A stretch of 62,809 nucleotides of DNA, counting the filler, from Bipalium vagum (taxonomy: Eukaryota), in assembly GCA_037834085.1 (NCBI GenBank). It is 3 parts of 3 records of this genome, joined end to end, with 100 filler letters (N's around TTAATTAATTAA, not from the genome) between each part and the next. Parts side by side here need not be neighbours in the genome. Positions count along the whole stretch, not along the records: positions 40,607 to 62,809 come from JBBMKC010225553.1; 2 more parts are not named here. One strand, written 5' to 3'. Below, in pieces: positions 41,786-44,700 of the stretch. Position 1 is the stretch's first letter. Each line of letters begins with the position of its first letter. The translations under genes were made by a program, and so were the position numbers. Below the pieces are notes generated by a model. The model was not told the origin of the DNA and did not search any database. It saw nothing but the letters and a program-made list of their open reading frames with translations.

Positions 41786-44700
41786 TTACCATCTGTTAGC
41801 AATGATTCCCATCGAGTTAAAATCGTCGTTATAACTAACATTTTTCGCTGGGGAAAAGTTGACACTGTTGTTGTTGTTATTGTAAGATGAGTTTACAAAC
41901 GGTTTTTCATAATTTCCTCCATAAGACTCGTTACCTCTCCAATTCAACGATTTATCCCAATATGTTGAATTGCCCGGTGGATAAAAGTGATCCATTTCCG
42001 TTGACCTTCCATTTAAATCCTGTTCTGATGGTTTTTTGTATTCTTTGTCCACGTAGGAATAATACGGATCCCGAGCTCTTTGTGACACGAAATCACTACT
42101 ATATTTAGGCGGATTTCTTTTCGGAGCGTTCGGATTTTCTCGAACATCATTATTATTAGTATTCGGAACTAATCCTCTTGGGACGTCTGAAAGTATATAA
42201 AATGAATTGTTGCTATCGATCAGATAAGACCAACTTCCAGTGGACTTTCGGCGATTTGAAAATTGAACGCCTGCTAAGTCATATAATTTGTCAGATATAT
42301 TTTGATTGGCTTCCTCTAGAACATTGACCAGTTTCTGCGCCTGTATGTTGTTTGTAGTAAACATTAATAAAAGGTTAATTAAATTATCAACTTTGTGGAC
42401 AGATAAATGAACAATGAATATAAAGTAAAATATTTGGTTTCTTTTTTCCATTGAGCTTAACTGAATTGTGTTTGACATTTAAGAGTCTAAAAGCACTGAG
42501 GGTTGATACTTGTAGAAGATGAATTTAATCTATTATCGACCTATGATTTTTTACAATTTCAAAAGCGTCTCATGTTGTACACAAAGTTTAAAGGAAATCA
42601 ATTGACTTGATCAGTAATCGTATAACTAATTAAATCTTATTCGACCTTTCATTACATTTTTCATGCTGCCAAACATAAAACAAGCTTTAATAAAAAGAAT
42701 TAGCCTCTTTTTCGGTACATCACTTACTAGGAAAGTTATCTCTTTTAGAAAGACCTTTATGTAACTAAAGAATGATAGTATGAAAGCTCTGTGCACTTGC
42801 TGAATTCCTCTATATCTGACTATATATATTAAGATATTCCACTATAGATCATTTGGACAATGTCAGGTTAACTTTTTTGTGTACCCATCATAGGTGACAA
42901 AACTTGGTATACTAGTCTGAGATTCAAGAAAAAACCAAAAAGCAGCAATTTAAGTTTTAAAAGAGCTCTGTAAAATAGAAATACGTATTGACGGTTTTTA
43001 TTGATCAATGAAATCGTTTACGAATTTAAATATGAAATAAAAATTTTATCAAAGATATGAGGAGAAGTTTTAAAGATTAAAAAATCTACTAATTATAAAT
43101 TATAAACAAATATCATTTATCCATAAATTATAAGGTTCAATATAAGGAGAATATCGATCGTATTATAAAATTTTAAATCATAAACGGACACTAGAGATTT
43201 ATTATTTCCATGTAAATGACACTTGTTCAACGAACATTAATTTCCTTAAACCATCATTTAGGTTCTTTTAAAATGTATTCATTTGCGAAAATTGATTAAA
43301 GATACAATGAATAATTTTTTATATTTTCAACATGAAAATATATCTTCTTTATCACTGAAATTTGAACAAAATATTTATGATTTTTAACTTTAATAGTTAG
43401 ATCAACCACCTGCTTTAAAAAGTTTGGCGCAACACATTGATAGAAATTTCGCTTCTAATTCATAAAAGTTTTCTTGAAAGTTAAGTTTCAGACTACAAAA
43501 ATGTTTATTCGGATAATTATCGAAATAATCAATTTAATTTAAAAATCTCAATTAAATAATTAACACATCATATGTTTTTTTATATTATTTTTCATTTTAG
43601 ATTTCAACTTTTCGAACCTATTTATCTTTGATAATTATCTTTAAAACTTTTAATACATCTTATTATTTTGACTAAATTAGCAAAAAATAATGAAATAATT
43701 ACATGTTTTTTGTCGTTAATTGTGAAAAAAGTATACGAAGTTCCTTTCTTTTCTTGGCGTGCAGTTCTTCCTATTCTGTGGACATAATCTTCGATTTGAG
43801 TTGGAAAATCATAGTTTATAACCAACATTATGTCATCAATATCTGTAAATCAAAAGAAATCATTTCATAGTTGAATAATTGCAGCTCTCTTAACAAATAC
43901 TGTTCAATGAGAAAAAAATGAAAAAAAAATAAAAACAGTCGGCAAGGAAAATGCAAATTAATCACGCCACTTAAACATTATTATTACATTTCATGTGTCT
44001 TGAAATTTGTCCCTTAATTTGAAATTAATAATGACTTTCTTTATTATTCAATTTAATTTAAGAACAGCATCATATTAAGAGAGCAGAGACTAAATATCAC
44101 ATTTATCAAGACAGGTCTTGACAAAAATCGATTAAATACCTAATCCTCTCGAAGCGACATCAGTTGCCACCATAATATTGGATTTACCAGTTCTGAAACC
44201 TATATGAAGTCATGTAACCTTTACCGAAAAAGATATGGGAAAATTTGCTAGCTTCTCTTTTAAATTACTGGAATCAATTGAAAACTACCACATGTTATGA
44301 AATATTTTTTTTTTATTCTAGTGACACCTTAGGATTCATGAATATTTCCAAAAATTAAATTAGCACAAGATAGACCATTTTTTAAACTCTTATAATTATT
44401 TTAAATATTCAAAACTGATATCCAATGTTACATTTTCAGAAATATAAAAAACATTAAATACTCAATGCTCAATACTTTTTATCAATTTCAAAGAATTTCA
44501 AAATAAATGAAAAAATATTTTAATAAAAAATTTCTTATTAGTAAATATTAAAAAATTAATTTAAATTCAGAATCACTGAAAACTTCGAGAATTAATAATT
44601 TAATAATAAATTAATCAAAAACTAAATATAAATACAACTTCATTAAAACAAATTTATGTTTCATAAACATAATTATCAACTTTGATTGTCTTGTATTATT

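Follow-up and report, generated by a model that had tools for sequence, protein, structure and literature searches.

Cells of yeasts, humans and plants hold the DDX5/Dbp2 family of DEAD-box RNA helicases at tightly limited levels. In fungi and humans this control operates through an intron placed at helicase motif V, and to our knowledge no helicase-sensing RNA element has so far been defined outside plants. Here we describe a motif-V intron of this family from Bipalium vagum (GenBank assembly GCA_037834085.1). The DNA analysed, hereafter the window, is a stretch of 62,809 nucleotides (nt), filler included, joined from three parts of three records, and all coordinates count along it. The features discussed lie in the 22.2-kb piece taken from record JBBMKC010225553.1 (positions 40,607 to 62,809), whose minus strand carries one clear gene, for a DDX5/DBP2-type DEAD-box helicase. 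Intron 3 of this gene contains the sequences for a predicted 22-bp RNA helix whose 3' arm lies over a candidate decoy 3' splice site, the use of which would truncate the protein.

The exon-intron structure of the gene was read from the sequence, and homology searches were run separately for each exon. The exons match the Pfam families DEAD and Helicase_C, with Helicase_C matched by the exons that flank exon C; for exon D the top relatives of solved structure are DDX17 and Dbp2, and homologues of the helicase carry the JGI name DDX5/DBP2. By these matches the gene product belongs to the DDX5/DBP2 (p68) subfamily of DEAD-box helicases. In the direction of transcription, on the minus strand throughout, a short exon 1 (from 47578) is followed by the tiny intron 0 (~42 nt), exon A (ending at 46859), intron 1 (46858-46808, 51 nt), exon B (46807-46368), intron 2 (46367-44200, 2168 nt), exon C (44199-44140, 60 nt), intron 3 (44139-43843, 297 nt), exon D (43842-43703, 140 nt), intron 4 (43702-42341, 1362 nt) and exon E (42340-41786), which includes the stop codon. 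Exon C encodes motif V and ends in ...ATDVASRGL plus a G, the first base of an Asp codon that is completed by the AT at the start of exon D; intron 3 is a phase-1 GT...AG intron at this point, written below as RGL/D with the slash marking the junction, and exon D includes motif VI. An earlier, sequence-only reading of the locus had placed a 297-nt intron at RGL/D, and our reconstruction yields the same intron. Intron 4 lies downstream of exon D, and its presence would render a transcript whose premature termination codon (PTC) falls within or before exon D a potential target of nonsense-mediated decay (NMD).

Three sequences come from one informative species. The search with the C-terminal exon returned one spliced metatranscriptome contig (L001) and one short open reading frame (ORF), P0134, while the search with exon B returned P0014, which is 92% identical in amino acids and only ~52% identical at four-fold sites; P0014 and P0134 are from genomic contigs in ENA analysis ERZ27256860. 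The spliced contig of this relative (L001/P0001) crosses ES/F, RGL/D and KKH/A(QKL) directly, and it is because a spliced relative reads across them that the three junctions around intron 3 can be taken as confirmed. The productive RGL/D junction is thus the one seen in the sole transcript at hand. In the same contig (L001:385-400) a frameshift in an A9 run divides the relative's helicase ORF, most likely an assembly or sequencing error. The P0014 contig also carries a 227-aa carboxylesterase-family ORF on the same strand, ~450 nt downstream of the exon B ORF and at the expected site of intron 2, which could reflect a nested gene, a different synteny or a chimeric contig.

More distant homologues share the position of the intron, and not its contents. 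The search with exon D returned relatives at 58-76% identity only. Residue 1 of exon D aligns to residue 426 of Dbp2, which matches the yeast intron position to within one codon. Five other eukaryotic contigs (L003, L004, L005, L006 and L007) also have a phase-1 intron at RGL/D, and the position appears to be ancient, in agreement with the literature (PMC4695336). The same source describes the DBP2/p68 motif-V intron of yeast and human as long, conserved in length as well as in position, and inefficiently spliced, whereas the length is not conserved here: the intron spans 297 nt in B. vagum and 75 nt in L007. The latter contig encodes a 63% identical relative (L007:3700-4000) and has intron positions 1, 2 and 3 in common with the B. 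vagum gene, with an intron 2 of 37 nt, an intron 3 of 75 nt and no intron 4; on this comparison the long introns 2-4 are lineage-specific expansions. The corresponding introns of L003 (638 nt) and L004 (356 nt) are GC-rich and unalignable with intron 3, and neither contains an arrangement analogous to the helix and decoy described next.

The helix in intron 3 is formed on the minus strand by 44084-44062 pairing with 43905-43884 (arm sequences GCUCUCUUAAUAUGAUGCUGUUC and GAACAGUAUUUGUUAAGAGAGC), giving 22 bp, three of them G-U pairs, interrupted by a single bulged U (44072). Its 5' arm (44062-44084, 23 nt including the bulged U) follows the 5' splice site at a distance of 55 nt, its 3' arm (43884-43905, 22 nt) holds a cryptic CAG and three more AGs, and the arms enclose an AT-rich loop of 156 nt (43906-44061), so that arms and loop together make up 201 nt. 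The duplex has an energy of -28.3 kcal/mol on the sense strand vs -19.1 kcal/mol on the antisense strand, where it is weaker because the G-U pairs turn into A-C and open a 6x7 internal loop. Pair probabilities of 0.80-1.00 are predicted along the helix, whether the intron is folded by itself or together with exons C and D. The two halves differ in strength: the loop-proximal 10 bp, with two of the G-U pairs and beside the bulge, contribute -11.0 kcal/mol, and the 12 bp at the base -15.4 kcal/mol. The best duplex in the intron (-29.5 kcal/mol) is far stronger than those of dinucleotide shuffles (-15.3 +/- 2.1), 0/400 of which reach it, and the z score of the whole-intron fold is -2.56 for the sense and -0.43 for the antisense strand. 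The arms are a true inverted repeat rather than noise. The 22-bp helix with three G-U pairs that the sequence-only reading had proposed is therefore real as a predicted structure; its further claim was that the G-U pairs point to structure at the RNA level. The antisense duplex is the weaker one, but a ratio of three G-U pairs to no A-C mismatch is expected with p = 0.125, or 1 in 8, under neutral decay of an inverted repeat, and would be even less telling if C>T changes on the sense strand are favoured in transcribed DNA.

The 3' arm coincides with what resembles a second acceptor. The loop ends in a pyrimidine tract (43906-43937, minus strand) of 32 nt and 87.5% C/U, which continues into GAACAG and stops 4 nt ahead of a cryptic AG (43900-43901; CAG at 43902-43900) located 57 nt upstream of the productive acceptor and preceded by an AG-free zone of 68 nt (43969-43902). 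Counted from the loop end of the helix, this AG occupies base pairs 5-6, and its predicted probability of being unpaired is 0.00. All four AGs between 43970 and the true acceptor sit in the 3' arm and are predicted to be fully paired; the true acceptor ACAG is predicted to be ~0.6 unpaired. A putative branch site, UUCAAC (43870-43875, minus strand), begins 8 nt downstream of the 3' arm within a 40-nt AG-free zone, with its A at -29 of the productive acceptor and 12 nt downstream of the arm. Strong pyrimidine tracts occur only twice on the sense strand of the 5.9-kb gene, here and in intron 2. The tract in intron 2 (45827-45858, minus strand) is followed by an AG at 45800-45799, 26 nt downstream and predicted to be unmasked.

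Both ways of missing the productive junction would end the reading frame almost at once. Splicing at the cryptic AG adds V plus 10 residues and then a premature TGA (43865-43867, minus strand), which precedes the exon D/intron 4 junction by 162 nt, and retention of intron 3 gives G-I-stop, a stop after two codons. The account given earlier of this part of the intron, in which a pyrimidine tract runs into GAACAG, the AG at 43901-43900 sits inside the stem 57 nt from the productive acceptor, and its use adds 11 residues before a TGA with an intron still downstream, was recovered in every detail on remapping and translation.

We favour a physical rather than a regulatory reading of these features, to which we give a probability of about 40%: the helix would form in the pre-mRNA, silence the decoy AGs and loop out 201 nt of the intron. 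Formation would be quick once the 3' arm has been transcribed, and would bury the cryptic CAG (43901-43900) together with the AAGAGAG run that follows, which hold the only AGs between the strong tract and the productive acceptor. Looping out the 201 nt would bring the 5' splice site, which precedes the helix by 55 nt, near the likely branch site, which follows the helix by 12 nt, and the 297-nt intron would behave like one of ~96 nt; the other short introns of the gene measure 42-51 nt. The net outcome would be to hold splicing on the productive RGL/D junction. We infer that the helix forms in vivo, that the decoy would be used if unmasked, and where the branch site is placed.

This proposal would join two known kinds of element, namely structure-masked acceptors and zipper stems. 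For the first kind, Meyer et al. 2011 reportedly found in S. cerevisiae that proximal AGs are concealed by secondary structure lying between branch point and acceptor, with the result that a distal AG is used. Those masks are short local hairpins downstream of the branch point, whereas here the partner arm lies 156 nt upstream. For the second kind, the zipper stems of the yeast genes RPS17B and RPL7A/B shorten their introns and enhance splicing, and the RPL7B stem is additionally a target of autoregulation (PMC12311795). A zipper stem links sequence near the 5' splice site to sequence directly ahead of the branch point; the B. vagum helix begins 55 nt from the 5' splice site and stops 12 nt short of the A in the presumed UUCAAC branch-like site, a placement that may correspond to this. 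The yeast stems differ in having been validated by probing and mutagenesis, in being regulated by ribosomal proteins that bind an alternative structure rather than by helicases, and in containing no decoy acceptor.

Several observations weigh against the masking and shortening that we propose. The evidence for the helix comes from one sequence, and the 75-nt intron 3 of L007 contains neither a helix nor a decoy, which makes the helix-and-decoy module lineage-specific at most. Helices of this strength are also not rare at the scale of the window: at -28 kcal/mol or below, the 22.2-kb piece has four, all of them on the minus strand, or ~1 per 11 kb of strand, and a reader scanning tens of kilobases will meet several. 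Besides the helix in intron 3, the four comprise a palindrome (53076-53161), one in GC-richer coding sequence and one in intron 2. As to the decoy, a long pyrimidine tract precedes 0/5 of the real acceptors of the helicase gene. Because these acceptors function without such tracts, the strength of the decoy is uncertain; the "poison" site may be weaker than it appears, and such decoys may do this organism no harm.

Nearly as likely as the masking helix is a neutral history, in which a 201-nt insertion with 22-nt inverted repeats, either a decayed miniature inverted-repeat transposable element (MITE) or other foldback element or the product of template switching, entered an intron formerly of ~96 nt and was tolerated by virtue of folding on itself, with neither the tract nor the AGs having any selected function. 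The arms, at 22-23 nt, are indeed of the form of terminal inverted repeats, and they differ from one another by three transitions and one indel, as expected of a decaying repeat, with a G-U bias that chance would give in one case in eight. Subtracting the 201 nt from 297 nt leaves 96 nt, near the 75-nt intron of L007 and the short-intron mode of the gene, and this 96-nt remainder retains its own UUCAAC branch-like site and its own acceptor. A DNA palindrome and the remains of a Tc1/mariner element elsewhere in the same piece are further points in favour of such a history. Against it, no target-site duplication is present, the flanks ...TAGTCTCT and TGCAATT... sharing no direct repeat, and the inverted repeat is confined to the arms, its extension into the loop being scored equally by 327/1000 shuffles. 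The arms are unique in the 22-kb piece, where neither has a further copy at three mismatches or fewer. A search of sequencing runs for the locus gave a single run, of unrecorded type and kept as contigs, and no RNA run. Among the matches listed from 376 Mb of contigs of that run there is likewise no further copy at a likeness of at least 80%, a weak negative in that the locus's own contig is absent from the filtered listing too; what is listed consists only of 35-45-nt AT-rich chance matches. Neutral insertion also leaves unexplained why the 3' arm is placed exactly over every AG downstream of the tract. Should the insertion prove to be merely tolerated, the locus would illustrate how a short intron can take in 200 nt, strong decoy acceptor included, when the added sequence folds on itself.

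The interpretation first offered for this intron was that it forms a helicase-sensing switch, a possibility that we consider plausible and not without precedent, and on balance unlikely. At low helicase activity the helix would hide the decoy; excess DDX5-like protein would open the weaker, loop-proximal 10-bp half, the decoy would be used or the intron retained, and the resulting PTC-containing transcript would be degraded, closing a negative feedback loop. Such a switch would be the masking helix described above, placed under regulation. The anatomy of helix, masked AG and PTC fits this scheme. The cryptic AG lies within the weaker sub-helix (-11.0 vs -15.4 kcal/mol), neither half exceeds the 10-15 bp reportedly unwound by DEAD-box proteins (as cited in bioRxiv 10.64898/2026.01.23.701338), and the PTC stands 162 nt upstream of a further exon junction.

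The precedent comes from two directions. The DBP2 intron has kept its position in yeasts and in human p68/DDX5, its splicing is inefficient, and it has been tied to negative autoregulation; in S. cerevisiae autoregulation runs through the intron at this position, which is also implicated in S. pombe and human (PMC4695336, PMC5393171, PMC1920232). That yeast DBP2 and vertebrate p68 share an intron, and that DBP2 is autoregulated through it, had been asserted at the outset, and the same three sources bear this out. The intron described by Barta & Iggo 1995 (via PMC4695336, PMC5393171, PMC1920232) is in the same gene family and at the same motif-V position as intron 3, and its outcome, negative control by way of non-productive RNA, is shared with the outcome proposed here. 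The mechanisms differ. In yeast and human, splicing is inhibited or the intron retained, followed by decay through Mmi1 and the exosome or by premature termination, and the known yeast mechanisms thus work by intron retention, decay or termination rather than by an alternative 3' splice site (PMC4695336, PMC5393171, PMC1920232).

The closer parallel is mechanistic. In land plants, from which alone it has been reported, the DEAD motif of DRH1 (RH14) and RH46, orthologues of DDX5/DBP2, has a 19-20 nt stem in which a second 3' splice site is concealed; the helicase has been shown experimentally to open it, yielding PTC-containing, NMD-sensitive transcripts, and covariation in 123 species is supported by R-scape (Burgardt et al., bioRxiv 10.64898/2026.01.23.701338). 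The same logic could apply to B. vagum: both cases have an intronic helix of ~20 bp in a DDX5-family gene, its stem holding an alternative 3' splice site that is here a candidate one, and in both the stem exceeds what a DEAD-box protein unwinds in one step, partial opening being invoked instead. The two also diverge. The plant motif is a single hairpin with a loop of 3-5 nt, whereas the 22-bp stem here closes a loop of 156 nt; the AG is near the loop end of the stem here and at the stem base in plants; and there is no sequence similarity between the two. In B. vagum a CAG that follows a pyrimidine tract lies inside the stem and would give a PTC upon use, the alternative site being proven in plants and deduced here from the sequence.

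We know of no helix-masked alternative acceptor described for the yeast or human DBP2/p68 introns. A switch would supply a concrete RNA-structure mechanism for the 30-year-old DBP2/p68 intron autoregulation, one that arose independently of the plant DEAD motif or in parallel with it. A helix-masked poison acceptor in a motif-V intron outside plants would also be a simple candidate for mutational test, and such an element would suggest that helicase-sensing RNA structures are a recurrent solution. Against the switch stand the absence of the element from L007 and the doubtful strength of the decoy, given real acceptors that lack pyrimidine tracts, and it is these two points that chiefly weaken it; further, the loop is far longer than that of the plant motif, and the other strong tract of the gene, in intron 2, is followed by an AG 26 nt downstream that is not predicted to be masked.

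In one respect the switch draws support from outside intron 3, as a second structured element abuts a stretch of intron 2 conserved with the relative. P0014 runs through the exon B donor into the intron, and its 34-residue tail matches intron 2 in two frames, at ~24/34 positions, with a one-base frameshift between them; the match implies nucleotide-level conservation of intron 2 over its first ~105 nt (46367-46262). This conservation is found even though the exonic four-fold sites of the same two species are near saturation (~52%). Partly overlapping the conserved stretch, the 181 nt at 46300-46120 are predicted to adopt a closed multi-hairpin fold with a closing helix of ~20 bp and a minimum free energy of -53.6 kcal/mol, the z score of which is -4.17 on the sense strand (0/200 shuffles being as good) and -2.67 on the antisense strand. 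A scan of 41700-47700 against Rfam at E <= 1 gave no match for it. We regard 46120-46367 (minus strand) as a candidate conserved structured intronic element. It has the conservation evidence that the helix in intron 3 lacks, suggests that the introns of this gene carry functional RNA and, supposing that an autoregulatory RNA element exists in the gene, competes for that role on at least equal terms. The broadest version of the switch, in which DDX5/DBP2 outside land plants gauges its own activity through a motif-V-intron structure that hides a poison acceptor while a second, partly conserved element starts intron 2, strikes us as slightly less probable again than the switch itself.

Very improbable, finally, is that the hairpin is the precursor of a microRNA-like (miRNA-like) or small nucleolar RNA-like (snoRNA-like) product: a stem of 22 bp is the length of a Dicer product, but a 156-nt loop is unlike the shape of a pre-miRNA, the C/D or H/ACA architecture is absent, and the permissive Rfam scan of 41700-47700 (no match at E <= 1) leaves snoRNA, miRNA and known-motif readings unsupported. 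There is a host-gene precedent, in that Moore et al. 2011 are said to have reported a miRNA encoded in the conserved intron of human p68/DDX5. PMC4695336 cites that work solely in connection with the conserved intron.

Elsewhere in the 22.2-kb piece, 53076-53161 form a near-perfect DNA palindrome with 26-nt arms, 88% complementary, and a 34-nt spacer, of equal strength on the two strands (-27.5 / -31.2 kcal/mol), probably a transposon end or a hairpin-forming repeat. A Tc1/mariner-type DDE transposase ORF of 202 aa lies on the plus strand at 55366-55974, its look-alikes being DDE_3 clusters (score 0.96), and ORF fragments near 54865-55110 and 56485-56754, noted from the ORF list only, may be further transposon remains.

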